From: Fimbriosthenelais zetlandica
Taxonomy: Eukaryota
NCBI GenBank assembly: GCA_977030845.1
Contig: OZ365114.1
Span: forward strand, 25,048,001-25,112,000
Length of the DNA stretch: 64,000 nt
Direction of reading: 5' to 3'
The notes under the pieces: model-generated
Told to the model about the DNA's origin: nothing
What the model saw: only the letters and a program-made list of their open reading frames with translations
Database searches by the model: none
Shown: positions 7,201 through 43,300 of the stretch, piece after piece
Position numbering within the stretch: the stretch's first letter is position 1
Layout: each line of letters opens with the position of its first letter
Translations under genes and position numbers: made by a program

Positions 7201-10200
7201 TCATAATATTCCTATTGATAATGTCCGATTTCAAAGGTGGCAGTCGCACACAAGCATAATTCATCGAATTATCATTGTGAACTGATGAGATTCCCTTGCC
7301 TTGATGTCTATTTTTTATGACTTGTGTACTGCTTATTATTATTATGTATGCACTGTCGAAGGAAACAAGGGAAATGGGAAAGTCTTTGGAAAGTAAATAC
7401 AACTAGACCTGTGTATTAGCGGACAAAAATATCTGTACCAGTGTAGTGTCGTGAGATGTCAAACAAACGGACACTATTACCTTTTATTTACAGTAGTAAC
7501 TCCTGACTACATCTTGTGGGTCAGACATCTGCTCAGCCATAATATAAAAATATCTAATTGAGATTTTTTTAAGACTATCATTTCGGTGGTATATCAGATG
7601 GGCTGCATTTTCTTTTTATTTAAACAAATTTATCCTGGGTTTGTTCAGAGTCATTATCGTATTATCGTATGATTTGTGATATTGTTGTTGTGTGTTGGCC
7701 CTTCTGGACCAGTATAGGGGTGGGGACGATTAACTTACCCTCGTCACTGTTTCTGGCCACATGGCACGGGCCACAACTCTAAAAACTCTAAGCAAGAGGT
7801 ACTGGATCGGTGGAGGTGTGGAAGGCACTAGTGCAAGCATACCGAAGTAAACAGGCAGAAGACAATCCTCATCCTGCCTTCCACCGACCCTATAGGTTTA
7901 AAAACGCCCCTTTACATCCCCTCCTCCTCCTCCTCCTAGAGGCGCTGCTTGCTCCTGTTGCTGGAGGAGTATAGAATAGTCAGTTGGTTTTACCCACTCA
8001 GCCTGGAGGAAAGGTTGTGTTCTCGAGCACCTTGCCCTGGCTGGCTATATGCTACTATATAGACCATGCCTTCACCACTCTGACCTAGGCCTAAAATTAC
8101 TGCTGGGGAGGAATTTTATCAGTGATTAGGTGCTAATTTAAGTGCTTTTCTCAATAACTGGAGGTATTAGAGATATACGAGGCCCAGTGCCAAGTGCATG
8201 TGGATAATTGGATTTAATACTATTCTTCATATAATTTCTGGAGTTACTTAAGTGTCATCGTAACTGAAGGAGGATTAATCATCAGTGAATCTGCGTGGAA
8301 GGTGAAATGTGTGCAACGCCAATCAGTGACAGCTCGTGAAGAGATAAATCACTGATAGCAGTGGATACTGGATTACAGAAATCAATTAGAAACGCCAGAG
8401 GGAAAGTCTAAAGTTAATCTTGCTCAGTTGAGATATTTGTCTGCAGTGATGAAACAGTATCTCACGGCTTACATAACTGAGAACTAACGTGCTTTATCAT
8501 TGAAAAATTTGATAGAAATTTAGTTTAAAATATTAGTTTCAAAATTGAGTCTTCTACATACTTCCATCTCTTCTTGACATAATTCAAAATGTCGAGGAGA
8601 TTAGCTGAGTTGCAAGCCAAGTTTTCTGGCAATAAAGAATCCAGTCCATCTAAGCCAGCCCCTGGCCCTGGACAGCAGACTGGTCCATCCGCTGTCCAGC
8701 GCAAATGGGGTGCTAAAACAACATCTGGATCATCTGCTGAAGCTGCTTCTGCTGCACCATCCTCGGAGTCCCCTACAACAGCAAGTGCAGGTGCTGGGAA
8801 AGGCCAACCAGAACCTGCAGGTGCCTCCAAATCTACTGTAGACCCTCCAGCATGGAGGAGAGGTGCAGCCAAAGAGCCTGAAACCAAAAAGGCGCCAGAA
8901 GCAGCAGCAAAACCAGGTGCAAAAGATGATAAAAGTAGTACTCAAGAATCAGAAGCTCGCCAGGGATCTGGTGTTGGATTCCGTCGAGGACCACCTGAAC
9001 CAGAACCTAAACCTGATCCTAAACCTGCTCGAAAGTGGGGGAAAAAGCCTGAGCCTGAACCTGATTCTAAACCTGAGCCACCAAAGCCTGAACCTAAGCC
9101 TGCACGAAAATGGGGAAAAAAGCCTGAGCCTGAGCCTGAAGCAAAGCCTGAGCCGCCAAAGCCTGAGCCGCCAAAGCCTGAACCTAAGCCTGCACGAAAA
9201 TGGGGGCAGCCAGCACAGAAAACAGTGGCTGAACCTGAAAGCAAACCTGCTCCCAAGCCTGCAAAGAAATGGGGTGTAAAAGCCGCACCTGAACCTGAGC
9301 CCGAGCCTGAACCCAAACCTGAACCCAAACCTGAACCTAAACCTGAACCCAAGCCTGTTAAAAAATGGGGTGTTAAGAAACCTGAGCCTGAACCCAAACC
9401 CAAACCGGACCCTAAGCCTGTTAGAAAATGGGGGCGCAAACCCGAGCCTGAGCCTGCACCTGAGCCTGAGCCTGAATCCTTGCCTGAACCCAAGCCTGAG
9501 CCTAAGCCTGCAAAGAAATGGGGTGCTAAATCTGTTCCTGCTGTTGCTCCCAAACCTTCAAAGAAAACAGTTACAGTCACTCCCACGGCTGAAGATGTCC
9601 CCCTTCCAGTTGCACCTAAGCCTGCTGAGCCTTCAAAACCTTTGGTTCCTGCTAAGCCTATGCCTGAATTAGAAGAAAAAAAGATCATACCTATGCCACG
9701 GCATATACCCCCACCATTTTCAAAGGTTACTCTTGCTGGAACGGTTTCCCAAGAAACACCACGTGGCCCTGTCCCAGGAGCAAAGTCTTCATGGAAACCC
9801 TACACTGCTGGTCCACTACGAGCACCCGCTCCTCAGCAATTTGGACCACAGTTTGCAGTTCCACCGCAAGAAGTAAGTCAGGTTGAGATGGAAGTTAAAA
9901 CTGAAGATCAATTGTCTACTGATGACCAAACACAGGCTGCTAATGTTGCAGCCATTGAAAGCACGTTAGTTACTCAAGAACCAAAGCCTGCAGAGGAATC
10001 ACAAGTAATATCTGAACCAGTCAGTGAATTACCTAAGGAACCCTCCCAGGTAGAAGCTGAGCCTCCAGCTGCTGAAGGTGTAACAGAGGCTGCTGTGCCT
10101 GCAGAACCCACTCCTGCAGCTGCAGAACCAGTACCAGAACCAGCACTAGAGGCTGTCCCAGTGGCAGAAGCAGTGCCACAACCTTCAGAACCTGTACCTC

Positions 10201-13200
10201 AAGTTACATCTATAGAAGAAGCAGCGCCACAACCAGCAGAACCAACACCTGAGGCTCCACAACCGTCAGAACCAGTGCCTGAAGCTGCAACAGTAGAAGA
10301 ACCAGCGCCACAACCAGCAGAACCAACACCTGAGGCTGCACCAGTGGCAGAACCTGTAGCAGAACTGGCAGAACCAGTGCCTGAGGCTGCAACAGTGGCA
10401 GAACCAATGCCACAACCTTCAGAACCTGCACCTGAGGCTCCACCAGTAGCAGAACAACAACCACAGATTCCAGAGCAAGTGGCATCTCTGGACCAGACAC
10501 AGCCTGCTGTTGTTGAAGGTGGGCCAATTCAAAAAACTGAAGGTGAGGTTGCTACTATTCTTCCAGCTGAACTTGCCACAGAAGCTGCACCTCTGCCTAC
10601 AGAACCTCCACTAACTACTGAACCTCTACCTTTAGCTGAGCCTCCCCCTGCTTCACCAGCAGCATCTGCTCCAGAGCCTGCATCACTAACCGAGCAACCC
10701 CAAGTTTCAGAACCATGTAAAGCAGCAGAAATGATTGTGACCAGTCTTCCTGAGGCACCAGCAGGGGCAGAAACAGTTCCAGAGATTTCTCCCGTTCCTG
10801 TGTCTGAACCAGCAGCTGCTCAAGCTAGTGAGATAACTGCAGAACCAGTCCCAGCTTCTGTACCTGAACCTCAGGAGGCCAAGCTTCCAGAGGCAGAGCC
10901 TGTTCCTGTATCAGCTCCTGAGCCAGAACCGTCTCAAGTTCCTGAGCCATCACCAGAAGCAGTTCCAGATAGTGTTGTAACACCTGTTGAAATTGCAGTA
11001 CCAGAGCCTGTACCAACTCAGGCAGCTGAACTATCTGCTGAGCCAGTACCAGTAAGTGCAGTAGATAATGTAGCAGCTGTGTCTGAGCCGCCTGAAGTGG
11101 CAAAAGTACCTGAGGCTGAGCTTGGGGCTCAAGTTCCTGAAGCATCAGCAGGACCGGTTGCTGAATCTCCACCAGAAGTTACACCTGTGCCTGAACCATC
11201 AGTTTCAGAGCCTATACCAATAGTTACCACAGCAGTTGAAGTCTCTGAAGAATCAAGGGAGCCTCTTCCAGCAGCTCCTACTGCAGTTCCTGAAATTCCT
11301 GCACAAGAGCCAGGACCCAGTCAGGTAGTGATGGAACCGGCTCAAATACCACAACAAGAAGTAGCTCAAGTATCACAGCCTGAAGTGGCCCAAGTCCCTG
11401 AGCCTGCAACTGAGCCTCTTCCCATAGTTCCATCACAAATTCCTGCTACTGAACCTATATCTGAACCTGCCCCAGCTCAGGTTGCAGAAACTAAAATAGA
11501 AATTGCTCCAGTTATGCAACCTGCACCTGAACCTGTATTATCAGAGCCAGTTTCACCAGTGGTCGCCCCTGTTCCTGTATCAGAGCCTGCTCCAGTATCA
11601 GAGCCTGTTCAAGTGTCTGTGTCAGAGCCTGATGTTGCAAAGGCCCCTGAGCCACCAGCTGAGCCTGTTCAAACAGAACTTCCTGTATCAGCTCCTGAGC
11701 CTGTGGCACACGTCCCTGAGGCAGAACCAGGTCATGAGATTAAACAAGCTATTGCTCCACCTGAGCCTGTAGCCCCAGTGTCTGTACCTGAACCTGCCAC
11801 CAATCAAGCACCTGGAGATTCAGTAGGACCACCTGAGCCTGCACCAGTCGCAGCACAACTACCAGAGATACCATCAGCACTCCCACCACCAGATGTGGCT
11901 CCAGTATCTCTACCTGAGCCAGCAGCAGCCCAAGTTCCTCCAGAACCAGTTCCAGAGGCTATGTCAGTGATTTCAACAACTGTACCAGCACCTGCAGTGG
12001 CACAGTGTCCTCCAGGACCTGTAGCTCCAGTTCCAGAAGTCATGAGACAACCTGAACCGGCTCCATTTGTACCCACGGTGCCTGCACCATCTAAGCCAGA
12101 AGAGCCAGCTGCTCCGAAAAAAGCCTTTAATAAAATGGACATCAGAACACCAATGCCTGCACCACATACTGTGAGGATTGTACGTGTACCACGCACAAGG
12201 TTGGTACACCCATCACAGGTCAGGGTACTCCAGCCTAAAATAATACATCCATCAGGCCAAGCTGCTCCACCACAAGTGCCCAATCTGCCCCAGCAACCTG
12301 TTATGCAGCCTGAACTGCAGGTAGCAGCAGCACAGATGGCCGTAGGACCTCCTGTTCAGCAGCATGTACCCACACCTTTGGAGCAACATGTAGAAATGTT
12401 AGGACAACTACCCCAACCTCCTACTCAACAAGAGACCTCAATGAGACTCGAAACTGCTCCAGAAATACAGCAATTGCCATCTGAAAGTCAGCCACAAGTT
12501 TCTATGACTAATATAACATTTGAAAGTAAATCAGCTCCTGAACAATTTATAAAAGAACCTCCTGATGTAGCTCGAATTCCCCCAACAACGTTAGAAAATG
12601 CCCCAGGACCTGAACTTACACCACCAACGCCAGCTGATGCACCACAAGTTATTTCTACCAGCCAAATACAAATGAAGGCTGCCCCAGAGCAACAACTTCC
12701 TCCTCCCGTTGTACCTCCAGTGGTTGCTCAAGAAGTTTGTATTGTTCAAGGACCACCAATGTCTGCCCCTGCAGAACCAGAAGTTGTTCCTGTACAACAA
12801 ATACAAATGCAGGCTGCCCCTGAGCAGCAACTTCCTCCTCCCGTGGAAGTACCTCCAGTGGCTTCTCAAGAAGTTTGTATTGTTCAAGGGCCACCAATGT
12901 CTGATGTTGCAGAACCAGAAGTTGTTCCTGTACAACAAATACAAATGCAGGCTGCCCCTGAGCAGCAACTTCCTCCTCCCGTGGAAGTACCTCCAGTGGC
13001 TTCTCAAGAAGTTTGTATTGTTCAAGGACCACCAATGTCTGCCCCTGCAGAACCAGAAGTTGTTCCTGTACAACAAATACAAATGCAGGCTGCCCCTGTC
13101 CAGCAGCAACAAGTTTCTCTTCCACCAGAAGTGCCTCCAGTCGCTCCTCAAGAGATTGCCTTTGTTCAAGAACCAGCAATGTCTGCACCTGCTGAGCCAG

Positions 13201-16200
13201 TTCCTGAACCAGCCCAACAAATAGAAATGCAGGCGGCACAATTTCCTCCTCCCCTTGAAGTGCCCTCAGTTGCACCTGAAGAGGTTTCGTTTGTAGAAGC
13301 ACCAATGTTGGCACCAGCAGAGACAATCACTGAGCCAACTACTGTTGTAGAATCATTGCCAGAATCACATGTTTCAACAGTCTCTTTACCTGTTGAAACA
13401 TCAGAAAAGGTCATGCCACCAAGTGCAGTGGAGGAATTACCAGCAGCAGTTACTCCCCAGCAACTTACTGGACTAGGTCAAACGAGTAAAGGTGAAGGTC
13501 TAAGTCAGGGTCAAGACCAAGGTCAAGATAAAGTCCCAGACCAGGGCCAAGGTCAGCCACCATCAAAAGGTGAAGGTAAATTACCGCAAGAAGGAAAAGC
13601 ATTGGATGAAGCTGGTCGCTCAAAAGATGGGCCAACTGCTGTACATGATGGACAAAGTTAGTTCATTAATAGTTAATTATTCACTAGTTAATATTTAGTT
13701 AATCTTCTGTTCAGAGTTGATATGCATGGCAGACAGATGACATGTACTGACTCCTCAATTATTGTCATACATGTCGATCTGAGTAGTTAATCAAAGATTG
13801 ATTGCCATTTAAACTCTAAACTAATATATTTCTTATAGCTAAGATGGCTATAGCGATGAGTTTCACTCTCAAATTCAATACCAAGGGGGCATAATATGTC
13901 CATCCAAAATATGAGTTCGCCATACTGGTGTTCAATCTATTATTTAGTGAAGTATCTCCAGCAGGAGCAATGCCAGAAAGCAGCATATTACAAAGGGTTG
14001 GCACATCACAAATCAAGTTGTGCCGGTAGCACAAAGCATCAAATGTCACTTCCATAGACCTATGTATAGGCCTATTCTCTCTTCCAGTAAGACATGGCGT
14101 TTGCCACAACGGCTTACCGGCGTTGTGTGGGAGAAAGATTGTTTGAAATAACATGTTTTTTCTTTATAATTCTAGGTCCACAGAACCAGGCATTTGTGAC
14201 CCTTGCCACCAATGACACATATGCCCTCGGGGCATTGGTCTTGGGACATTCCTTGCGGAATGTGGGCACAACGCGACAACTTGCTGTTATGATCACCCAA
14301 GGCGTCACTCAAGGTGTCCGGTGAGTGCCTTTTTAATATACTATAAGAAGCCGGAAAGAGCTTCAGAAAATCGGTCAAACGAAATCATGTAATCTTAAGT
14401 ATATTTCAGTGTGAAAATGTGTTTTTTCTACTTCAGGTTCTTAGCCAAATATACATCTCTTTTTACTAGTATTTCCATATGTTTTTACTTCTCTGTAGTT
14501 TTAGTCCTTAGACCAATAGAAGTGGATGTCTGATGATTCACAAACATTACCCGGTTCAAGACTCAGTGTTGACTGGTGCTTGAAGAAATATAAATATCTG
14601 ACATTTCTCTTCTTTGACTGTTGGGCCAGCCTCTACTTTCCTACCCCACGCCCCTCTTTATCTGGTAAAGGTGGGCCCCAAACTTAGCCAGCTAACAGAT
14701 AGAATGTGTGCTCAGAGCAAAACACCCATCACCTACTGACATGTGAAATCCAGTGTAAATCCGACAACAGAAGTGTACAATTCCAAAGGGAATTTTGTCA
14801 ACTGAGATATATTTATTTCGTATTGGCTTTCTGATATCAATGTTAAAATATTGGTCAGGTGTAAATTGGTGTTCACGGGCAAAACCCTCTTCTCCCAGGA
14901 GAAACTTTCAGTTGGATGAATTACTTATTAATCTGAAAAAAAAACGTGCACCTTTCAAAAAAATTACCCCTCCCAATAGCGAAGGATCTCGAAAAAATTG
15001 TTAATATAAACCTTTCATGATACGTTTTTTTCAAAATATATTTTGTAAACTATGCCTAATGTTTATTGAAAAAATATTTATCTGTTCTCTGTGCCCCTCA
15101 CTTTGTCTATCTACAATACTCTGCCTCTCCCACAAAATCATCATCCACCGTGCATGTGTTACACACTATACCTCCAACATATAAAAATAGGAAAAGTCAT
15201 GTAAAAATTACCTCCGCAGCTCTAGGTGAGCAAGTCACCCTAGTAACCTAAGCGAGTTACTCAGCTCCCGCCCACACTGTGATAGCGTGTGTTGCATGGT
15301 TGGGGCCGTTAGATTGCGCTACATGAGAACTGCCAGGTTACCTCATTCAAGGTGATTCTCTATGCTATCTAGTGTCACTCTCACAAGGTCAGTTAAGACC
15401 TTGAGCTACTAAGTATAGGTACTAATATATTTACAGGGCACTGGCCTAAATGCTCGGCTGATGGGTAAAATGATGAATAGTTATTCCACTGACCTGTTTA
15501 TGAGTAAAACTCTTTATCCTGTATTCTTATTGGAATCTTGTGAATTACTATTCTAACCCATATCAATTAAATTGAAAGGAATTAAAGGCGGTTAAATATA
15601 CGCAGCAAAAAGTTTCTTGGGGATAATTGGAACAATATCTCATGTGGGCTGGCTTTGAAATCATTTCTTATTATAGGTGATCAGCTCCTAGTATACCGCT
15701 CACCTGGCATCCCTCCAAGTCACCCCGGTTGCCATGGGAACCTAGAGTTGCACCTTTCTATCAGATGTTTTCTTTTCTCCCCATGAAATTAGTTTTTTGG
15801 TTCTTCTTACTTTCTCAAACTCTTAGTCTTGCTGCAGGTGAATACTAAGATTCATTGTGAAGCCATTTTAAAGACTTCATTGCAGCAGCTCTGAGTTTTG
15901 AGTGTAATAACAATTCTTCAATTTTTGATAGATCGTGAGTTTGGCACATACACCTGTTGAGTCAGTCTAACTCTAAGTGAATGGGCTAAGGTCTGAGGTA
16001 ACCAGGCCATGGGGCAACTAAGCCCACAGCATGCATTATTGGTGTATTACTTATATTAACGTACAGAGGGCAAACTCTGGTATAAACTGGTCCAGCACCC
16101 AATAGAAATTATGAGAGTCCATGTTGTGGAATGATAAAATGTTCTTATTATTAATGATAGGCTAATTAATGAGATATCCCCAAAATAGGCTGCGATATCT

Positions 16201-19200
16201 GCTGTTAAATCAAAGAAACTTTGACCTATTGGATCAATCAAATTGAAGACTTTTTAGAGGAAATCTTTACTGATAACAGCTTTTTCTTTGTATTGCAGAC
16301 ATCAGTTGACACAGTTGTTTGACAGTGTGACGGTGGTAGATGTTATGGACAGTGGAGATGCTGCCAACCTCGCTCTCTTAGCTCGACCTGACCTTGGGGT
16401 GACCTTCACCAAACTACACTGCTGGAGACTGACACAGTACACCAAGTGTGTCTTCATGGACGCTGACACCCTGGTACATTGTCTTTAACCCAGTCAAAAT
16501 TCACCTTGTCAGTGTTCAAATGCCATAGGGAGGGGTCCAGAACCAACTAAGACCTGACTATGAAGTTCTAAATGTCCTCAAGAACATTGAGTATTGCCAA
16601 AGATGGATATTGCAAAGCACTATAAACTTCACTGCCTCAGAACCAATGTTAGCAGCACAACTATCATATCTATCCTTCTTGCTCTCCTGATAGATACTCT
16701 AACCATGATTGATTGTCATGTTTCAGGTTGTACAGAACATTGATGAGTTGTTTGATCGGGAGGAGCTATCAGCCGCGCCTGACGCTGGCTGGCCTGACTG
16801 CTTCAACAGTGGCGTCTTTGTCTTCAGACCATCAGAGGAGACTTACCAATCTTTACTACAGTTTGCTCTTACACATGGAAGCTTCGACGGTAGGTATCAA
16901 TGTAACCCATGTAAGCTTCAATGGTAACTTATGTTAGCTTCAATGGTCATTGTCTTTTCAGTCACTGTATCAGATTCATTGCTAACTGTCTAATGTTGCA
17001 GGTGGCGATCAAGGACTCCTCAATTCATACTTTAAGGACTGGGCCACTAAAGACATAGCAAAACACCTGTCTTTCGTCTACAATGTAGTATCTCAAGCCT
17101 TCTATAGTTATTTACCTGCCTTTAAACAGTAAGTTTTATCATTTTGAAGTAAAAAACAACTTTTGAATGGCTTATTTTTCCATATTCCATGGTTACTTCA
17201 AAGAGACAACCATGTCTTCTGCTTGGCTAAAAAAAATGTGAGGTACCAAGCATAACTTGGCGCTTTGAGTTCCCGGGTCTTCTTTATGGAGGGGGTACAT
17301 TTTGTAAATGGTATTTTTCTCTGCAAATTTTGACACCTGCAGATGCAGCAAGACAAGGTAAAAGACCAAGAAAATAAAGTTCTAATTGTTACCTGATGCC
17401 TTGTCAGATTCCAGGATAACGTGAGAGTGGTGCATTTCATTGGAACAGCCAAACCATGGCATCAAAAGTACAATACAGGTACAGGCCAGGTGGAGCAGTC
17501 TGGTGGCGTGGCGCACAACCAACACTTCCTCCAGCTGTGGTGGAAACTCTTCATGGACAAGGTGAAGCCGGGACTGGAGCCAGGCGTGGTGAGTAGGCCC
17601 TTAACTCTCTACCTGTAACCAACCAAAAACAAAAAAGGAAAAAATGAGAAATCAGATAATCCTTATTTGAAATATATTCAGATGATAAAATATGCGTGAT
17701 AGCGACTGCTCAACTCGTAAGGAATCTTCATTTCAAACTTTAATAAACCTCAATAGTATTTCTGGTAAGATTATTGCAGTCTCTTGCAGTCAAGTTTTGA
17801 CTAAATTAAGTAATTATGGCATGAAGTTAAAATGTTTATGACAACTCTAGATTTGTGATTACTAAACTAGTAAAAGAGTGTGACCAAGTTGCTTATAACC
17901 AAACTGATTCCATATAGTTGTAATGTTAAATTCCCTTTCTCTTTTGTTGATTAGATCTATAAGCATGAGATTGCCCCACGTTATTCCCCCAAACAAAATC
18001 CATTTCCATTTCGGCATCATTGTTCTATTAGAAACAAAAGTGTTAAACTAATTCGATGCATGAAGCTCAGTTGAGAAAAGGTGCATGTGAGCCTGCCGAA
18101 AAAAAACTAACACTGACATTGGGTGGGCAGGTGGACAAACTAGTAAGACATGCAAGGTATTTGTTCTACATACACTGTCCTTAAAGTATGAGGCAGATAT
18201 ATACATCAACTGAACATGACTTATTCCATGAGAGAGGTAGAGTTTCTATATACTACATGGTCATTGTAATATCATACCTGTAAGTTGATGAGTCCAACAG
18301 ATGCTGTACTTCATATGAACATCAGGCTTGGATCCACTTTTGGAGATTGTTATCAACAGGCGATTGGATAATTTCTGCTTGATTACATTTAAACTAGAAA
18401 TTTTGAAGCCAAATAGCATCCAAATTGCCTTTTATAAATCGCCAAAGTGGAGCTTTGCCTTATGAGACTGATTGTGTATACATGCGAGTGAACATCGGCG
18501 TTTCATATCATAAACCCATTCTATCTCGCCCATCAATAGGTTTGGAATACATGTGAAGACAACTGCTTGATTTTCTCTTTTACCAATCGCGTTTCATTTG
18601 CTACATCAGGCTATGCTACATCATTTCTCCTTGTGAAAAAAATTGTTGCAAAATGCTTTGGAGTTAGGTTAATTATATTTGTATGATATAGAAACCAATT
18701 ATTCTTATTCCCTGCATGCTAACAGCTCAAACAAACTGGACAGGTAAAGTCAAAAACATTACATTATATAACCACGATTTATCATTAATTGTATTGTTTA
18801 TCTGAATTACAACTTTTATTTGGCTATAAAATTAATATAAGAAACACTCATTTCTCATTAGTTAAGACATATTACACACAAAAGTCGCAGTATCTAATTC
18901 TTTATGCATGATGTATTTTAGACTTGGTTAAGAGGTTTTCTTCAGAACATTGTACACATGATCAACTGATTCAAAATCAGTATAACTGCTAAAGCAACGG
19001 AACTCTGAATCAGGTGTCAATAGCTTTATACTGAAAAGTCGATACTTTATATATTCCTTTTCATCAACCTGTTTCTTTCTCTTTCCATTCCTGGTTTCTT
19101 TTCAAAAAGTTTAAGTTATGCTCTCCTTCGTTAAAGCACAACTGTATTAAAACTATAAAGTAGCTGTCATTTAGTTCTATAACTACCCCACCTGAAATTT

Positions 19201-22200
19201 AGATAGGGATGAGTAGAACATTCCTTTAGATATTTACCCCCAACTTCTCCAATATACAAAAATATCCTTTGTCAGTACATTCTATTTCAACCTTAGTAGC
19301 ATGCATCCCACCTTCCTTTTCGTTCCTTTCTATGTTTTATTACCCAACGAATAAGTCCTGTTGTAAATTGGAGATTATTTTTCTTCCAACACGAAAAAGG
19401 GTAATATGGTCCTTCAACTGTATACATTGCTACCATAGAGGACATGGGCTTTAACTGAGGAGATCTTCTATTTTCTCATTTCTAAAGCTACTTATGAAGA
19501 TTACCCTATCCTCTCTGAAGGCAGATGCCAAACCTCAAAACCTCGGTCCCCTATCTGAATGTCCTGATAAGTTTCACTCTGTGGTAAGAAGTCTTTGACG
19601 GTTTTCACTATCCTACCCTGATCTGCATGAATGTATGTTGCCTTTAAATGTTTCCAAATGGCTATGCTTCAGATCCTCAAAAATGAGCTATACCTAAAAT
19701 GATAATGTCTGAAAGGCCGCTTTTTTGGTATTTCGTGAAGAAAAGAAAAAAGTTGGAATAAGTTTAAATTCTTATTATAATCCTAAAATGCATCTCTTTT
19801 TGCATTGCGTAAGCATAATTGTCCAGTTTTAAACCATGTCCCTCAAAGTGCTGTACTATTGGTTCTTATTTTTGTCTTTGTTTTCTGTCTTTTGTCAATG
19901 TCTGTTCCAGTCCCTCAGATGCCATTCGTCATGTTCTTACTCAAGGGTTTTAAGCCATTGCTTTGTCCCTCAAACCCTTTCTTCTTCTTTTCTATTATCT
20001 GTCTTCTCTGTCCACCACTTCTCCCTCTTCTTCTTTGTCTCTTTATTCTCCTACTCTTCATTTGTGAGTCTTTGTTAGCCTCATCATTGCCTTCATCATT
20101 GTGTTACCGGTATCAAATCGTTTGGGCTGAGATCATAAGGATCCGCTTGTCAAGCTTGCTCCCAATTTACTAGCTTTCTTCACATTTCTTTTGAAAGCAT
20201 TCAGCTGAGGATACAATAACAGATCAGGATGTTGTCAGGAGTCCAGATGAAGCAAGTATCACTTTGGGCTTATTGAGATGCGCCATTATAAAGTATGTTC
20301 CTTGTTTCTAAAGGAAGATCAGCAGTTAACCATTGGGACACATGACCAGTCTATTTCATTCAGAAATAACATGATCAAATTCCATGCCCTTGACCAGAAC
20401 ACCTGTGTTATAATAATAATTAACTAATTTATGCATAAGAAGATCCTATTGTGAACCCAGTTAAACATACTTTCTTTCGCGCAAGGAACATATCTGTATG
20501 GTGGGTCTTATTCATAACTTAGTAACCAAGGAGGAGCTGCATTTCACTGAAATGGTTGAGGGTTCTTTTATTTTATTAGTTCTGTACACACGTATTGCCT
20601 TGCTTTACCATTTCGCTTTCATCCTGTCTCAATGTACACTTCGGCTAGAGGCTCTTTGTTTAATTTAACCCCAAGTAAATGTGCACCGGCTCTTTGTTTA
20701 GTAGCGCATTTTATATCTCTATCATTAAGTCCTTTCCAAGGTAGGCTATACATTGTATCGGTGAGTTCGGAAATGTGTTGTGGACATTTTATCATCTCAT
20801 GGTAACATTATTTACATGTGTAAATTATTACTGCATGGTCATGAACCATGTTCTCAACGAGGTCATGTGACCTTAAACCTTGTTGACCTTATCCTGAAGA
20901 CTCACTGTTGGCTAATGGACACCCAATTATGGCTCCAGAAATTGTCAAAAGGAATTGTCAGAAGCACAGGAGATGGAAGTCAAGTAGGGCATTATAAGGC
21001 AGAGCTGTGGGCGACTGCTTCCTAAATGACTCAACTTCAGTCATATAACAATGGCAGCATTATTAATTAATACCCAATCACAATAGTTTGAAAGTGGTGT
21101 GAAAGAGTTCTTGTTCTAATCTACTTCCATTATATGGACGAGTTCCCCAGTCAGGTTACCCACACCAACTAAAGGTTTCCCCGCTCTGTGGGGAATAGAA
21201 AACAAATGAAACCTAAGAAAAATTGCTTGCACGCACACACACCCATCCATCACCTCACTATGTACAATGCTAAATGAGCTTCTTGCATCAAATGAGCTGT
21301 GATTTCTATGGCTTAGCGTAACTTCCTTTCTATTTCAGTCTATCAATGTAAATCTCTATAATTGACAAGAGATAAGATAAACTATTTTTTCCACCTTTCC
21401 TTTAAATCTATTTTCTTGTCCCTTTTGAGCTTTTGACCTTGTACCCAAGCCAGGTACTCAAGTTGTGTGGCCATCTAACCCTTTCCTTTACAGACTTATC
21501 TTTTTCAATGCCACTTGCTGTCTTCTGTCCCAGCCCTTGGCTGTCATGGTGATGGCCACAAACTGTTTCTACTTGTAGGTGGGCATGCTTTCACTGTTTC
21601 ATGACTCATCCCAAAAATTAGGCACCCACGGATCAACGCAAGATATTAACTATCCCCTGTCGCCTAACACCAGCTACCCTGAGAAGTGCATGAGCTCACC
21701 CTATGTTCCTCCAGCAATGACTGTCTATTATGACCCACCTCCTGTTGCTAACCAGCCACCTGTCTCCGTAGTCATGCCAGAAAGGCCATATACATTCTTC
21801 GAGAGTTTTTATTCTGAGCCACCCATGACCAACTCCGAGAGTTACACTTCCCCTTACCACGTCTACAATGCTAATGAGTTCTGTCATGCATGGAATCATC
21901 ATCATAACCAAGCAGGGGAACAGGCGGAGGATGGGGTAGAGGGTCCATGTTCTATGGACACATGTGAAGGTCATCATTGTGGTGGTCAAGGTGGAGGGTG
22001 TGGTCCTGCCAATGAAGAGGAACAGGATGAGCTGGCCCACTGTTCTGGAGCATCTTGTCACGGACAGGGGCATTGCGACAGTAACCAAATGCATGATCCA
22101 AAGAAAAATGTAGATAACCAACCCATGCAAAATGCAGACACAAGTAATAACAATGTGAGAGTTGAAGCACCAGGAGCGCAGGACAGCAACAAGAACAAGG

Positions 22201-24105
22201 TAGATATTAGTGGGCGTGTGAGTAATAAGTGGTCAGATTCAACACATGTAAAGAAGGACTCATTCTATAAGTGTGAGGTGAGATAGACAACTTCATTGTA
22301 TGAATGAAGGATGAAAATGACCTAGTATCTCAGGGTGATAGTGGTGTTTGCCTCTGGCATCATAATAATATGCTGACATTCAGAGGTTAAACATATGATG
22401 ACATTCTGTTCCATCTCCTGCCTGTAGCTTTCCACTGGCCTTTTAAAGACGATGAGTAACATTTGGGTAAGGTTCTTTAAAATATCCTCTGAGAGAATTA
22501 AACCCCTCTGAAATCATTACACTCTGGTCGGTGGACGCAGGGCAAAATGACGCTCCACAGGTCTTTAGGGATGCAAGATTCAGATAATGTTAATTATCTG
22601 AATTACAATTTACAAACTGCCTTTTACTCATCTCTGACGTAGGGTTTTTGGCAATTGAACTTGCATCTCTATGTCATATACCCGGATGTAAAAGAATGTG
22701 CATGAAAGAATCATGGGGATCACCGGAGAAGCGTTCACTAAACTTAAAGCAAATGCTTTGACATTTGAGGCCCCCCTCTCTTGATCGTTATTATAGTCAC
22801 TGTACACGTTGGATCTTTTATGATTTAGTAGAAGCCTGATAGTCCTATGAGCTAATATCATTTGGGATGACAATTTAATGTCCTTGGTATGTGATAGTGT
22901 CAATTGTCTGTGTAGTATAAAGGTTCATAAGTTCGTAGCTAGATACATATGTATAATATTATCATCTCAATCAATGGAATTCTTAATTGCTTTCTTGTAA
23001 ATAGAGGGCTACTGTGGCTTATATTATTTCTTCCAGTACTGGTATGGTACTTACCAATCGGGTATGCTAAATGTTGTATGCTCATTACACAACGTTAATT
23101 CTTATCTTTGGGGTTGGGTTCTAACATGTTTCAACTAATCAAGCATGCTAGTCTGATATGCTTCCATCATGAAGTATATCAAGATACATTTTCTATCTGG
23201 CAGCGTTTCTAAATTATATCCACTACTGATCTTCTGGAAATGGCACCTGTAACATCACCACTTTATTAATATGCATTTAAATAGGGAATGTTGGATTACA
23301 ATGCCGTACACAGTAAGTAACAGTTGCCTAATCCATTGTTCTAACTTTGTTTTACCCAGCCTTCATGTTGGACCTGCACAGTAAGGGTGGTCCTACTTTA
23401 TCATGTTATTTGAAATTAACTTGATCTTTTATTTAGAACTGTGGCATTTCACTATTGATCATTAATAACGGTATAAATACCATCACCACAACAAGCAGTA
23501 ACTTTGGAAATGTTGTGTGGATTTCGTAAATAACTGTTTCTAAAACTTACAAAAGTAGTTTGCTGATATTCACATGTTGTTTAGCATGTTCAAATGCTCC
23601 TTTAATTATTTTAGCATGTGTCTAACATGTTTCCTTTCTTTTGCTTGTCTTTTTACTTCAGGGTTAGTACTGTCATTTCCCTTCTGAATGGTTGTTATTA
23701 TTTCGTTTATTTGTATAGATGGGTGTAGTTGGTGCTATGGCTACTCTAAAAGTGGAATCCGGCGCAGATTACTCCAGAGTAAGTCATTCTTTATCTTACC
23801 TTAAAATGAAGATTTAAATTTCTGTTCTTAAAGGAATGTAGGTCATTTTCACAACCTAATATAAGTGGCCATTCAATGGATGTACAATGGTAAAGGTTGT
23901 ACTTACTTATTGATTTGTGCTCTTTTCATCTTATTCGTGTCATGTTTTCTTGAACTGATTAACATTTCCTATTTCAAAGGCGGAACTTGATGATCAGCAG
24001 CGGCAGTACCACTGGGAGAAAGGTCAGATTGATTACATGGGCGTAGACGCATTTGCCAACATTCAGGCTCGCCTGGACACGGTGATTAAAGGCGACAAGA
24101 AATAG
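1235..24105 (+). CDS. GYG1: Glycogenin (GT8 self-glucosylating glycogen primer), short isoform, 8 coding exons, 330 aa
   Basis: Exons 1235-1250 (MASSD, G|GTGAGA), 14176-14320, 16299-16473, 16727-16889, 17002-17128, 17408-17588, 23719-23778, 23980-24105. All introns are GT-AG with matching phases; total 993 nt. Translation shows family hallmarks: [52 protein letters not shown] (DxD), [40 protein letters not shown] (acceptor Tyr region), [11 protein letters not shown], and the C-terminal [23 protein letters not shown] (glycogen-synthase-binding tail). Confidence 0.97.
8589..13656 (+). CDS. Giant alternative first coding exon of glycogenin (1,689 codons + 1 nt), Pro/Glu/Ala/Val-rich and PEVK-like; if unspliced it is a stand-alone 1,690-aa ORF ending at 13661
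   Basis: Stop-free 5,073-nt ORF. ATG in caaaATG context with an in-frame TAA at 8580-8582. Repeats are synonymously diversified, so this is not a simple DNA microsatellite. It ends CAA A|GTTAGT, a phase-1 donor matching the phase-1 acceptor of glycogenin exon 2 (tctag|GT CCA CAG AAC CAG GCA). Coding status is well supported; the fusion is inferred. Confidence 0.8.
8995..9530 (+). repeat. Coding repeat block: (K/E)P dipeptide tracts punctuated by [KR]KWG
   Basis: Translation [14 protein letters not shown]..., [37 protein letters not shown]. At DNA level, CCTGAA/CCTGAG/CCCAAA hexamer variants. Confidence 0.9.
12663..13073 (+). repeat. Three tandem 135/138/138-bp coding repeats (45-46 aa), followed by two degenerate copies to ~13320
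   Basis: Units start with caaatacaaatg at 12663, 12798 and 12936, and a fourth begins at 13074. Peptide: [46 protein letters not shown]. Confidence 0.95.
21579..22277 (+). CDS. Candidate in-frame cassette exon of glycogenin (233 aa; Pro/Ser/Tyr-rich, then Cys/His/Gly-rich, then Asn/Asp-rich)
   Basis: The ORF begins exactly after a pyrimidine-rich acceptor (tttctacttgtag|GTG, phase 0) and has a phase-0 donor GAG|GTGAGA at 22277/22278, three codons before its stop. The flanking glycogenin exon ends at 17588 and 23719 are both phase 0. It could instead be an alternative terminal exon (TAG at 22284-22286). Confidence 0.7.
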
Positions 24106-37350: not shown

Positions 37351-40300
37351 TCACTGTCCTTGTGCCTCCTTTTCTCCTGCTGCCACCTGGATGTTGCTCT
37401 CGGATTTCATAATATTTTGAAGCTTATCTAATGCTTGCTGATCATACTTGATGAAGTCTGGCAGGTCATCATGCTTTTCTACTGCATTCTTCATGTACTG
37501 ACTAAGGAACTGAAGGTGAACTTCCAAACTTCGCAGTTGTTGGCGCCTCTCTTCTTCCTCATGGACCTCATCCTCTTGTTGTTTTTCGAAGGCTGAAAGA
37601 ATGACCAAATAAATTCGAAACTATATTTCAAATTCAATTGTTATCAAGTCGTAATCCCATGGTCCCTTTCATCGTCTGATGTGAGTTGGTTGGAAAAGAC
37701 CTATACCACCTTTAATTTGTAAACCCCAGCCCAATCAACAATGTATAAATACCATTAACTACAGCCATTATTTTAAATGCAAGGGAATTTACCAGTATCA
37801 TCAGTGGTGTATTCTTTCTCAAGGCAGATTAAAACCTTGATTCGATGGAATATGTATACCCATACATCATCTTCCAGACTACCCGCCACATCCTCCCTGG
37901 CCTGGACAATAAAAAATACATGAACAAACAGGGCTCTTAATCCTGAATAGATCTGCTCTTATGTTCATCTATCTCAACATATCAGAGAATAAAATAATGA
38001 AGTGCAGATGAGATGTTATCAATAACTTAATGTAAAGAACCTTACCTCGTCAAAGGCGAAAGTCAACAGGCTGATGAAAATGTTGACCATAAGGATCAAT
38101 ATCGTTAAATTGTATAGAAAGAGAAACAGCTTCCCCGTCACCCTAAACGTGTGAAGAATAGAATATCAATGCATTTCACATGCCATTACTAACCCTTCAC
38201 AAAAACGAGCTGAAAGGGTGGTTATATTCACCTTACCCAAAAGAATGACAAACATGACCAATTCATCTAAAGGATGTAAATGTTTTGTCCACATGAAACA
38301 AAAACTTACGGACTTCTCATAACTAGTCCAGGGAAGTCATATTTCCCAAGTAGAGTGGCGAATAAAGATTCCATTGAGCGAATGAACGTCGAGTAGTCAT
38401 ACATATCATAACCAAACATCTGATTGCCCAGCCTATGTTGAGATACAAATTGGCATATACCATGTAAGATCAATGAAATGTGAGAAAAAATAACTTTGTA
38501 CAGAAAACATTGGAGTAATAAACATACAGTGCAAAGCCTATGTAGATAGCGAAGAACACAACAGAGAAGCTAAGTAGTTCTTGACGAACTAGCTTGAGTG
38601 AGCGACCCAGTTCTCTGACATTACTGCTGAAGTTGAGGATTCGCAGACATTTTGCTGTAGCAATGAAAGCCACAATTCCTACCATAGCATTATAAGCGAT
38701 TTCATAGGCTGACAGTTGCATGTAGCCTATATTAGCATCTGGAAAAACAGAGAGATCAATGAAAATGTCAAAGTGCAGTATAACATTTTTTTTGATGAGT
38801 TCATAATTTAGGTTGCCCTTTGGGTAGGGTCTTACCTTTGTTCTCTTGTATTTTCTTTGTGATGTACCTGCTATACGCCTCTTTAGATCCATTCATTCCA
38901 ACACATGTGAACGCCAAAGCCAGGAAAAGGACTTCAACTTTGTTCCAGGGATCTTCAAAGTACTCCCTGAATCAAATAGACTTTGATGAGTCTCAAAGTT
39001 AGGCATGTTCATCAACTGGCCAGAATATGTTGTGTCCATATAAAAGCAGTCACATAGGAATCTAGGTAAACTTACTTTGGATTCTCCTTGATTTTTAGAG
39101 CTTCGTGTATTATTAGGTACAGTAGGAATAAGACAAACAGGACCATGATGAACACATTGACCGTGCCCATACTTCCTCCAGTGGCATAGGCATGAAAGGT
39201 GTCCACATGTATCCGTGGTAAAACTCCACCTGAAAAAAACCATAGTCAAGTGCACTGTTGCAAATCCTAATAGCCTGTCATGGTCTGGACCATGAGCTAG
39301 ACGGTGGGATTTGCTAATAGCCTGTCATGGTCTGGACCATGAGCTAGACGGTGGGATTTTCGGGAAGCTAGTGATCACATATTAATTGGCTCATTCGTTC
39401 AAACAGACATGTCATTTAGCCATGCATATACTGCCTCAGTCAGTGATGGCATCATAGTATACCTGTTGGTGGAAATTCAAAAAGACATATGATCGAGGCG
39501 AACACATGGACATTAGCATTGTAAATGGTTGTCTCAAAGAATACGGCTCTCGTTCTCTTGTCAACCCAGTCATGTTCTATCATCAGGTCTATCAGATATT
39601 GAGCAGACGCAGAGTTATTCCCAAGGTCTGCTACATAACCACCACCTCCATATAAACCACTAGCTCCAAAGTAGGGTATGCTCTGAAAAGCGAAAATCAT
39701 TTACATTCACTTCAACAGTCAAATCTCAGTCACTCATTTATGTTATGGTCAAATACACTGAAACTAATCGCTTGAGATTGAGAAAAAAAATGTGTCTATA
39801 TATACCTGAAGATCTAGAAATGATTTGAATCTGAAAGCATCTGCTATACGGGTATTTGAGGGGAGACTAGAGTTGACGATATGTGACCATTTTTCTGTGA
39901 AGTCTCGGTCTTCCTCAGTCAGAAAACCATACTCAGGGCGGCATGTTCTGTGAGGGATACCCGGTAAGCAAAACTTTGGTTTGATTCGCACCTGGCGAAG
40001 GCGAACTGTGCCGAGTTTGACAGAATTAAAGTCATTGATGTATTTTCCAAATAAACGAGAGGTTGGTGCATCATTGTAGTATCTCTGCCAATACATGTTT
40101 GGGATGAGTATCTGCTTCATCCATCTCCACATCTTTCTCCCGTCAGAAATCTGCATAGGAACCAAAAAAAAGAACATATCGGTTCTTGTCAAGCATTGCA
40201 CAGACGGCCAACTTAAAGGAAGAGTTGAGAATATACCGATTACCTGTTTAATTGACATATCACTGCGGATGGTAACAGACGGCTTGAGCATTGCTAAAAC

Positions 40301-43300
40301 GGATCTCTTCATCAAGTAATCTGCGCTACTTCTGGATCCCCATGCGAGGTACATAACCTTGTTAAGAGAACAGAGCAAGCAAATCATCAATTACCATTCA
40401 GAGAGCTTTAATGAACTTGTCAACACAATTCAAGCATACTGAAAGCTTACGATGGCGAGAAAGATGATGTAAAGGCAAACTTCTTTGATGGTTCTTTTGG
40501 CCAGTTTTCTCCTCATTCCAATGTACCTGGCTCTTTCCAATGCTTCATCCTGTAGAGGCGCGAGATCGGAGTCGTTTCTGTCTATAAAGGCAACAGACTA
40601 GAGTTTTAAAAAGTGATTTCATCGCAGCCTTGAGATAAAGTATATCAACAAATTTAGAAGTAATGATATTCAGTTTTCATTACATGGGCATGTATATCAG
40701 ACCTTGATTTTCCAAGCCGTGCTCCATGTCAGTGCTCAGAATGGTTTTCTTGTAATCTATCTCATCACGTTCATCCAGCTTTTTCAAAATACATGCAATT
40801 ATCACTGCTATTACGACCACCTGTAACAGAACAAATACAGTGTAGTATGGGATGGTTTAAACAAAACACATTCATAAGATTCCATAACTCAGAACCCTTA
40901 CCTTTATAGGTTCAATCACGAATGCATTCTGGAAGAAAGAAAGGAAGAATGCTGACAACCATTCTTCGGCGCGTTCCTTGCCCCATTCAAGGCTGTAAAG
41001 TATAACAAAAAATGCAGAAAGCATTATCGCCAGGACAGCTAAAATCCAGGCAATGTAGGTGCACCAGTATGGCAAAGGGTACTGCCGCCAATACTGCTTA
41101 ACTGCCAAGTTTTCCAAATCTGTGCGCTCTGACTTTGGTTTGTAGAAGGCTTTGGGAGGGTCAAAACCTCGAGGCGACTCATTTGCCTTCAGCGGTCTTG
41201 GTCTGCTCTTTTGGAAGAAGAGAATAATGATGGTAGTGAGAGGCAGAGAGCACAACGTAGCCATGACACTGACATAAACTGTTGCTGCTGATATGACGAT
41301 CGGACCAATATAAATGGCCACATCGTTTTCGGCACTTTCACTGCTTTTGAACCACATAGCGTCTGTGATCATTGTAATAAAGAGAAAAGATGCTCCACAT
41401 GCCAGGCGTTCTTTACGAGTGAATTTGCTGCGCTCAGGTCGAGCAAATATAGATATCCAGAGGTGTTCTTCAGAGATTTTCTTCCTCGATGTTAAGGTGA
41501 AGAGGTTCTTGGAGTCAACGAGTTGTTCATGGCCAGCTACAGGGAGAACCCTCTCAATGTTACCGTCAGTTTCATCAACAGCCAGCCACTGGTCACAGAG
41601 GAAGTGATATCTGCAAAGAGATAATGTCATTATGTCCCTATGAATGTCATTAAAGGCAACAGACGTTTTAGAGATGTACATGATTTAATAGACTCAAACT
41701 AACGTGACATCGGTTTGTAGGTCCTCAATGATGACCTTGTCAAGGAACCAGTTCTTGTTGTCCCCTTTCCCACTGTTGTCATGCCAGATGTGAATGTGGG
41801 TCAAAGGCCCCAGTGACTCTTCAGTGGTCATAAGGTAGTGACGGACACTTCCAAGTCCAAATCCCTGAAAACAAAAACTCAAGATGCTCATGGATTGTAG
41901 AAGAATAATTATACTGAGTCAGACCCAATACTGCCAGTGTTGAAGTTCCATACCTTAAAGGGCCCACCTTCCACCATGCGGGTACCTGTGTCACCGTGTT
42001 CTCCTGAGACGATCATCCTGACTTTAGACGTTGTACCACTCCTCTGACGGACACCAGTTATAACAGTGACTGTGTACCTCCAGGATGCCCCACCAACATT
42101 GTCAAACAATGGGTAGATCCCCCACTACAAGGAAACAACCAAACTTATAAATACTAGCCTTGATGTTGAAGTGTAATGATGATATCTTCAGCAAACTTGG
42201 AACCTCGGTCTAAACCACCTAGCGTCAATCTCATATTTTTATCTAACTTACTTTAATGACGTCATATCCGTCAGCTCTTCTTGCCCATATGAGCAGAAGT
42301 ATGAAGACCACAAAGATGGTTACGATTGTTGCAAATACAGCAGGGTTGCCTTGAAGAAGTGCAGCAAAATTACTCAAGACATTTCTTCAAAAAGAGAAAA
42401 GTACAAGCTTTAAGTTGGTGATCTTGAAATGAAAATGTTAATTAGAAACAACTACAATATCCAAATTTCAAGTTTAGTTCTGAAGGACCACAGTATCATA
42501 GAGGTATACCGGAAGTCGATGGTATTGATTGTTGGAGGCTTAAAAGCAGGAGCCATGATATTGGATGCCTCGTTGGACGAGGTGCATTCACATTTTGTTA
42601 TACATGTTGTTGTTAGATTTGAAATCTGAAAGAAATACATACTGTGAATTTGTCTTTTTCATTGTTCAAATATATCAGTATTTTGAAATGAGATATTCCA
42701 TGCAATAGTTGTTTTACTCACAATACACTGAATGTTTTGCCATTCTTCCAGGTGTGAATTCCAGTTACGACAGGCTGTGTAAGAACTGTGAACGTCAAAA
42801 GGAAAGTCGAAATCCTTCAACACTATTTCATCTGCTGGAACCACACTCTTGTTCAGGCCATCCACTGTTACTGCTCATAAAAAAATCCATCAGAACATGA
42901 AAATCTGTCATGAGTGACTTTAAAATATTTTGAAATTGAAAGTTTCGTTACCCTTTCATTTATACATACCGATTTCTCTCATGCTGTCAGTAAAAGTGGG
43001 ATGTACCAGCAATAGGCCAACATAAACTCCTGGCGACATAGACACGTTGTCATGGATGACAATAGACCATGGATTGGGAACCCCAAATTTTGGTAATGAA
43101 TCAAACTGGTCATAATATGTCTGTTTTGGTTTATACCAGATTTTCTCTTCAGCTCTGAAAATGCTGAATACCTAAAAAGAGAAGGAGAATTTGATCTTCT
43201 ATCCATATCAATATAATACAGATATCAAGACATTGGCAATAGCAAGACATCCAAATCAAATTAACTTTCATGACACTCTTGACTTACCAAAAGTTGCTCC

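Follow-up and report, generated by a model that had tools for sequence, protein, structure and literature searches.

An exon in the glycogenin linker of Fimbriosthenelais zetlandica carries a conserved disordered motif cluster and is probably optional

Glycogenin contains a linker that runs from its catalytic domain to the C-terminal tail that binds glycogen synthase (GS). This linker is said to vary in both sequence and length, and its length, according to cited in vitro work, governs the size of glycogen particles (PMC9188544). This applies to the human proteins GYG1 and GYG2 and to GYG-1 from C. elegans, where the linker is disordered and connects the catalytic domain with the GN34 tail (PMC9188544). 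In yeast, the C-terminal acceptor tyrosines of Glg1p and Glg2p also reside outside of the catalytic domain, as indicated by a reference listed in PMC11126952. A third group of related systems is found in public annotation, where invertebrate proteins termed 'glycogenin-1-like' are contained in RefSeq as long and short isoforms. In the oyster Crassostrea gigas, three splice isoforms of glycogenin with alternative exon regions, CgGN-alpha, -beta and -gamma, have reportedly been cloned (said to be the work of Li et al., J Agric Food Chem 2017); the oyster alternative region might correspond to the exon described here. This exon is contained in a stretch of 64,000 nucleotides from Fimbriosthenelais zetlandica (GenBank assembly GCA_977030845.1, contig OZ365114.1, positions 25,048,001 to 25,112,000 of the forward strand), which we refer to as the window, and it encompasses positions 21579-22277 of the plus strand. 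In an original prediction based on the letters of the DNA, this region was proposed to be a cassette exon in the glycogenin linker that would lengthen the linker, might add priming tyrosines and might bring in a metal- or redox-sensitive module. From the analysis described in the following, we consider it likely that the cassette represents, in this genome, an optional linker exon whose orthologues are found in brachiopods, nemerteans, annelids, molluscs and relatives of F. zetlandica, and which would provide a switch between a short and a long tether together with a docking motif.

The closest described counterparts of the cassette are the optional blocks of the RefSeq isoforms, which are found at the same site, starting right after catalytic residue ~267-283 and preceding the GS-binding tail. 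Examples include the isoforms X1 and X2 of Lineus longissimus (P0033/P0103), X1 and X3 of Haliotis cracherodii (P0058/P0088), X2 and X5 of Mytilus galloprovincialis (P0059/P0100) and X1 and X3 of Mya arenaria (P0050/P0049). The long isoforms contain an in-frame block that is optional by annotation, and they share with the window a bipartite motif of the form P[YF]xPP ... Ex[FH]YxExP[ML] ... YxA, which in the window is represented by PYVPP ... ESFYSEPPM ... YNA. The blocks are 166-229 amino acids (aa) long compared to the 233 aa of the cassette; outside of the core the sequences are unrelated, and none of the RefSeq long isoforms contains the run of cysteines and histidines that is found in the window. 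The tyrosines of the yeast proteins show no sequence relation to the cassette, whose own tyrosines interchange with phenylalanine.

The cassette consists of 699 nucleotides encoding 233 sense codons and is open throughout, as found in the translation of the window. Its acceptor, tgtttctacttgTAG|GTGGGC, contains a polypyrimidine tract and ends in ttgTAG|GTGGGC, whereas its end at 22277 is defined by the donor GAG|gtgaga, and both are good splice sites. The TAG of the acceptor doubles as an in-frame stop 5' of the open reading frame (ORF), and on the other side the frame ends two codons beyond the exon in a TAG at 22284-22286. With the former as opening and the latter as closing stop, the two splice sites, both in phase 0, thus bracket the ORF exactly, and inspection of splice sites and frame bore out the original prediction in this respect. 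The exon is symmetric, with phase 0 at both ends and a length divisible by three. A frame of this size is not expected by chance, since at a stop frequency of 0.057 only 0.007 intervals of at least 235 codons would be anticipated among the 7305 stop-to-stop intervals of the window. A recount of its composition agrees exactly with the numbers initially given, with 10 Tyr among the 72 residues of aa 25-96 and, in the 65 residues of aa 102-166, 8 Cys together with 9 His. A gene model obtained from tblastn searches with the annelid glycogenin P0013, combined with the inspection of splice sites, confirms the location of the cassette between the last catalytic exon, which ends at 17588, and the exons encoding the GS-binding tail. 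In this model, the tether that connects the end of the catalytic domain to the tail motif would measure ~40 residues without and ~270 residues with the exon, in line with the predicted several-fold extension and making a ~6.5-fold longer tether upon inclusion plausible.

Strong evidence for the coding nature of the exon is provided by homologous sequences. A phmmer search with the cassette against 1.8e9 representative proteins retrieved 19 homologues, the best with an expectation value (E) of 2e-44 at 50% identity, and all but one of them are ORFs called on genomic contigs. P0013, annotated as glycogenin in the annelid Dimorphilus gyrociliatus, is the sole full-length match and contains the motif in frame after its catalytic domain. 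In five other genomes (L004, L005, L006, L007 and L009), an orthologous open exon is located in the glycogenin gene just 5' of the exon encoding the WE.GQIDY tail. In L004-L007, the last catalytic exon is seen 5' of the cassette, whereas the contig of L009 covers 2.5 kb and ends short of the catalytic exons. The original prediction had named orthologous introns devoid of an open frame as evidence that would speak against it; in all five genomes, the frame at this position is open. An acceptor with pyrimidine tract and a donor, both in phase 0, are found in the window, in L004-L007, L009 and L010, and in L001, the nearest relative, acceptor and GAG|GTGAG donor are identical base for base.

The comparison of the window with L001 by Nei-Gojobori counts reveals pronounced differences between parts of the exon. 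In the core (aa 34-106, positions 21678..21896, plus strand), which we have defined based on alignment, substitution counts and predicted disorder, the proportion of nonsynonymous differences (pN) is 0.15 and the proportion of synonymous differences (pS) is 0.74, corresponding to a ratio of substitution rates (dN/dS) of ~0.05. Respective values of pN and pS are 0.45 and 0.79 for residues 107-166 of the Cys/His-rich segment and 0.42 and 0.52 for the exon end (aa 167-233). These counts point to strong purifying selection on the core, while selection on the remainder of the exon would mainly keep the frame open. In light of the length statistics, the homologues, the synteny and the purifying selection, we conclude that 21579-22277 is, as judged from sequence comparison, a genuine coding exon. 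The alternative of a chance ORF or of a dead pseudo-exon within an intron is refuted by the same four lines of evidence and carries practically no weight.

The core is defined by a pattern of conserved residues that, in its first half, follows the sequence M-x-x-P-[YF]-x-P-P-x-[VIM]-x-x-[FY]-Y and, after a gap of variable length, continues as R-x-[YF]-x-x-x-E-x-[FH]-Y-x-E-x-P-[ML]-[TS] ... Y-x-A-x-x-F. Across 37 aligned modules, P41 and P45 are found in all 37 sequences, E80 in 36, E75 and P82 in 35 each and R69 in 33. Five tyrosines occupy conserved aromatic positions, where Tyr and Phe are distributed as 29 and 8 at position 42, 24 and 5 at position 51, 28 and 7 at position 71, 34 and 3 at position 78, where scallop long forms contain the sequence HF, and 36 and 1 at position 96. 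The original prediction had suggested to check the conservation of Cys, His and Tyr among orthologues; aromatic residues are conserved at these five tyrosine positions, whereas the Cys/His cluster is shared in part with L001 only. A search pattern based on this motif and reading P[YF]x[PL]P ... [ED]x[FHY][YF]x[ED]xx[MLF] ... YxA matches 39 of the 142 proteins compared, 38 of which are module-bearing; this list contains both members of two near-identical pairs, and P0012 failed the pattern for motif A.

No family of Pfam matches the core, a feature search of the ESM Atlas with the core returned no usable match, and the core profile detects nothing credible at E <= 10 among all PDB chain sequences, including those of human GYG1 and full-length GYG2 (8z0a_E). 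AlphaFold2 predictions of the core alone show no fold except for one short helix, at a predicted template modelling score of 0.19. In a prediction of the full-length isoform X1 from Lineus, the cassette is assigned values of 35-55 in the predicted local distance difference test and the segment is not docked on the catalytic domain. In these models, the core behaves as a conserved intrinsically disordered region composed of a cluster of short linear motifs.

To identify further proteins containing the module, we have assembled a set of homologues in a whole-protein search with P0013 and have analysed it locally by hmmsearch with the core profile (A3) and the motif pattern. Word-based searches with the module region of P0013 or P0010 alone, which yielded one and three proteins, respectively, were too insensitive for this purpose. 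In full-length glycogenins, immediately behind the catalytic domain, the core profile has matches in Lingula (E = 6e-18), Lineus (E = 1e-17), Tubulanus and Dimorphilus, and the module is also found in glycogenins of molluscs including Haliotis, Mytilus, Mya, three scallops, Pomacea, Gigantopelta, Littorina, Aplysia, Biomphalaria, Physella and others. The E values of module-bearing proteins range from 1e-8 to 1e-33, and a long form from Saccostrea (P0098), a member of the oyster family, shows a weak match (E = 5e-4). In the named glycogenins, the module is located at residues ~280-400, with the cassette of the window corresponding to residues ~270-450. The same searches with profile and pattern did not find the module in the long insect forms of glycogenin contained in this protein set.

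For eight species, which belong to two phyla, RefSeq contains pairs of isoforms that differ by a core-containing in-frame block. A single block of 166-229 aa, which contains the core, is all that distinguishes the two proteins of Lineus, Haliotis, Mytilus, Mya, Pomacea and Littorina, and this is nearly so for the pair of Gigantopelta, while the difference in Mizuhopecten is made up of two shorter blocks, one of 19 and one of 109 aa. Most of the long forms retain the GS-binding tail. These isoforms are automatic annotations, although they are in agreement between the two phyla. With regard to the proposed cassette nature, orthologues of the exon are thus annotated as optional in eight species, and the status of the exon in F. 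zetlandica as cassette in the glycogenin linker is supported by homology.

A regulated use of the exon is also suggested by the sequence surrounding its acceptor. In the 3' splice-site region, which comprises 35 intronic and 30 exonic bases (positions 21544..21608, plus strand) and which its identity to L001 marks as candidate splicing-control element, the two species are 86-93% identical, compared to 73% in the coding core. At the start of the cassette, L001 has kept the base at eight of the nine initial third-codon positions, although synonymous sites elsewhere are saturated. Conserved intronic and exonic sequence at an acceptor is a hallmark of regulated exons, and the conservation of the leader and the adjoining intron probably reflects splicing control.

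Together, these features suggest a mechanism where alternative inclusion would toggle glycogenin between the short and the long tether, with the long form additionally exposing the conserved linear motif as a docking site for a partner in the glycogen machinery. In this proposal, the exon is composed of three parts, a conserved leader, a disordered core of ~70 residues that is rich in Tyr and Pro, and a fast-evolving polar tail, and the run of Cys and His would reflect a compositional drift of the disordered spacer that is confined to this lineage. Several points weigh against it. Inclusion, skipping and the choice of donors in F. zetlandica are deduced from the largely automatic annotation of other species, the conservation of the acceptor region is seen in one species pair and is not found in more distant loci, and the partner of the docking motif is hypothetical. 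A complex prediction of the catalytic domain of P0013 (residues 1-262) with its own module (residues 278-360) had a score of 0.00, which weighs neither way.

Among other explanations, it has been proposed that the cassette would add extra tyrosines for self-glucosylation. Five of its ten tyrosines are indeed located at conserved aromatic positions, with Y96 and Y78 being the most strongly retained (36 and 34 of the 37 modules), and a requirement for several tyrosines in yeast Glg proteins is stated in the title of a 1996 paper by Mu, Cheng and Roach, as listed in PMC11126952. The published basis of the original prediction, in this case and with respect to linker length (PMC9188544), does exist, for the former in the form of a listed title. 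Moreover, there is a loose resemblance between the sequence SFYSEPP and AFYSYLP, the gene's own canonical acceptor arm, although this could be chance. However, each of the five residues is a Phe in some lineage, which could not be the case for an obligatory acceptor, the serine at the +1 position is variable, the conservation covers Pro, Glu, Arg and Met over ~65 residues and thus more than an acceptor site requires, and AlphaFold2 leaves the segment undocked on the catalytic domain. The assignment as priming sites is thus weakened, least so for Y96 and Y78, and we regard it as unlikely. The exchange of each conserved Tyr for Phe in one lineage or another, together with the conservation of Pro, Glu, Arg and Met, appears to fit a binding or docking motif better. 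Another proposal concerns a metal-binding or redox-sensing module in the segment encompassing aa 102-166 (positions 21882..22076, plus strand). Its 17 Cys plus His in 65 residues and the Cys-rich sequence of L001, where about four or five cysteines can be aligned (as in GPC, GHC and GGC), would be compatible with such a function. Conversely, L004-L007, the other homologues and all named long isoforms lack the cluster, its pN of 0.45 against L001 is three times the value of the core, the segment is of low complexity and rich in Gly, Glu and Gln, and neither the best match in Pfam, a non-significant hit to the GW182 M_domain (E = 0.4), nor the sole weak match in the PDB, a His-tag artefact (E = 2.2), provides a related domain. 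With a cluster that is not conserved beyond the nearest relative, evolves fast and matches no domain, the claim is not upheld and a metal or redox module appears very unlikely. The segment should consequently be viewed as lineage-specific, as judged from residue counts and the comparison with L001.

Two further explanations retain the exon as coding sequence but dispense with either the switch or the motif. If the exon were constitutive in F. zetlandica, it would always be included and there would be no change of isoform. Its good splice sites and the existence of gene models from other species in the long form only (P0013, P0025) would be in accordance with this possibility, which we nevertheless consider somewhat unlikely, since skipping of the same in-frame block is annotated in eight species of two phyla, the exon is symmetric at every locus examined and regulated exons typically show such conservation of intron and exon sequence around the acceptor. 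In addition, short transcript-derived glycogenins (336-374 aa) without the module are, among the full-length proteins compared, closest in the catalytic domain, with 75-76% identity. In the other case, the cassette would act as a passive spacer, where length alone matters and the conservation of the core is incidental. This would agree with the effect of linker length alone on the size of glycogen particles in vitro (PMC9188544), with the almost free evolution of two thirds of an exon that nevertheless stays open and with the predicted disorder of the whole cassette. It is difficult to reconcile with a dN/dS of ~0.05 in the core and with invariant residues that are common to brachiopods, nemerteans, annelids and molluscs and to the relatives of F. 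zetlandica, and we thus view a mere spacer as quite unlikely. We have also rejected the idea that the cassette corresponds to the long exon encoding the linker in vertebrate genes of the GYG2 type, as the core profile misses every solved chain including full-length human GYG2, one glycogenin locus was found in the genome and all named carriers of the module are invertebrates.

Optional long and short isoforms of glycogenin are already present in public annotation, whereas the new aspect of our analysis concerns a deeply conserved and undescribed motif cluster in a linker that is regarded as variable. While the literature treats this linker as a variable spacer, we find here a strongly conserved motif cluster, likely optional, that is described by no domain database. 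With more reservation than we attach to the optional exon itself, we propose that the apparent variability may hide an ancient, alternatively spliced motif cluster of ~65 residues, common to at least brachiopods, nemerteans, annelids, molluscs and the lineage of F. zetlandica, which might serve as isoform-specific docking site, and with lower likelihood as second priming site, and link glycogenin to a further component of glycogen metabolism. If this were real, it would amount to a splice-controlled setting of the number or size of glycogen particles in these animals, in some of which, such as bivalves, glycogen storage is of physiological and commercial importance, and if the motif were to bind a partner, it would offer a new regulatory handle on the initiation of glycogen synthesis. 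For the annotation of the window, the region 21579-22277, supported by its frame, homologues and splice sites, should be marked as coding, and the Cys/His run should not be called a metal-binding domain.

The 3' part of the cassette (aa 167-233, positions 22077..22277, plus strand), assigned from its substitution counts and splice sites, is polar and rich in Asn, Lys and Asp, and it holds two alternative donors in phase 0, which would result in exon ends at 22199 (AAG|gtagat) and 22217 (CGT|gtgagt). The former had been correctly placed in the original prediction, whereas the position 22216 given for the latter was in error. The region following the exon (22278..22286, plus strand) contains the donor gtgaga, conserved as GAG|GTGAG in L001, and the in-frame TAG at 22284-22286, with the sequence ATTAAA located 3' of it at 22497. 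A tail-less form generated by read-through to this TAG is possible in principle. Five glycogenins of other species, P0013, P0025, P0032, P0042 and P0070 (from Dimorphilus, Lingula, Plakobranchus, Elysia and Pecten), contain the module and lack the WE.GQ.DY tail, and they could represent gene models that are cut short or genuine tail-less forms. A different architecture is observed in the transcript-derived proteins P0053 and P0078, which in a length of 621-625 aa join a GT8 domain of glycogenin with a LIM domain (PF00412) and PF25076.

In the surrounding gene, five exons on the plus strand of the window align to P0013 at 43-71% identity and encode a GT8 catalytic domain including the DxD motif, all placed by tblastn with this protein and by their splice sites. 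The first of these exons (14184..14320) has an approximate 5' boundary, with acceptor candidates for a start at 14176 or 14184, and a donor after 14320. It is followed by the exon containing the DxD motif in the sequence FMDADTL (16299..16473), by exon 3 (16727..16889), which also matches glycogenin-1 in the PDB (E = 3e-20), by the exon with the canonical acceptor-tyrosine arm AFYSYLP (17002..17128) and by the last catalytic exon (17408..17588), which ends in phase 0 at KPGLEPGV|gtgagt (GGCGTG|gtgagt). Downstream of the cassette, splice sites and the comparison with L004 define a small linker exon of 20 codons with phase 0 at both ends (23719..23778, plus strand), whose counterpart in L004 is found at 15136-15198. 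This small exon might be optional as well, comparable to the difference in two blocks between the isoforms of Mizuhopecten. The last coding exon (23980..24105, plus strand) encodes the C-terminal GS-binding motif up to position 24102, followed by the stop TAG at 24103-24105, and its sequence matches the tails of L004-L007, L009 and of named glycogenins.

Searches of the whole genome found at least one copy of the cassette and at least one copy of catalytic exon 3, with both counts being lower bounds, and as far as these searches found, there appears to be a single glycogenin gene. Only two sites in the genome (G000:C11:8739583-8739750 and G000:C25:31553298-31553738) match the Pfam family GT8 at E <= 0.01, and they presumably belong to other GT8 enzymes. 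Individually, the exons of glycogenin are too short to reach this threshold.

Directly 5' of the first catalytic exon, the longest ORF of the window (8589-13661, plus strand) extends over 1690 codons and encodes Pro/Glu/Lys-rich repeats with KKWG motifs. Some of the named invertebrate glycogenins are also very long (750-860 aa), including one that is labelled 'mucin-2-like'. In L007, a LINE-type (long interspersed nuclear element) sequence with Exo_endo_phos and RVT_1 domains occupies positions 1-2301, a few kb 5' of the first glycogenin exon seen there, which is catalytic exon 2 at 4854. A scan of the window against Rfam gave no match. On the opposite strand of the window, at 38470-50501, resides a neighbouring gene for a receptor of the polycystin-1/REJ type, which consists of a single exon of 1379 codons encoding PKD and REJ domains that is followed by exons for Polycystin_dom and PKD_channel.

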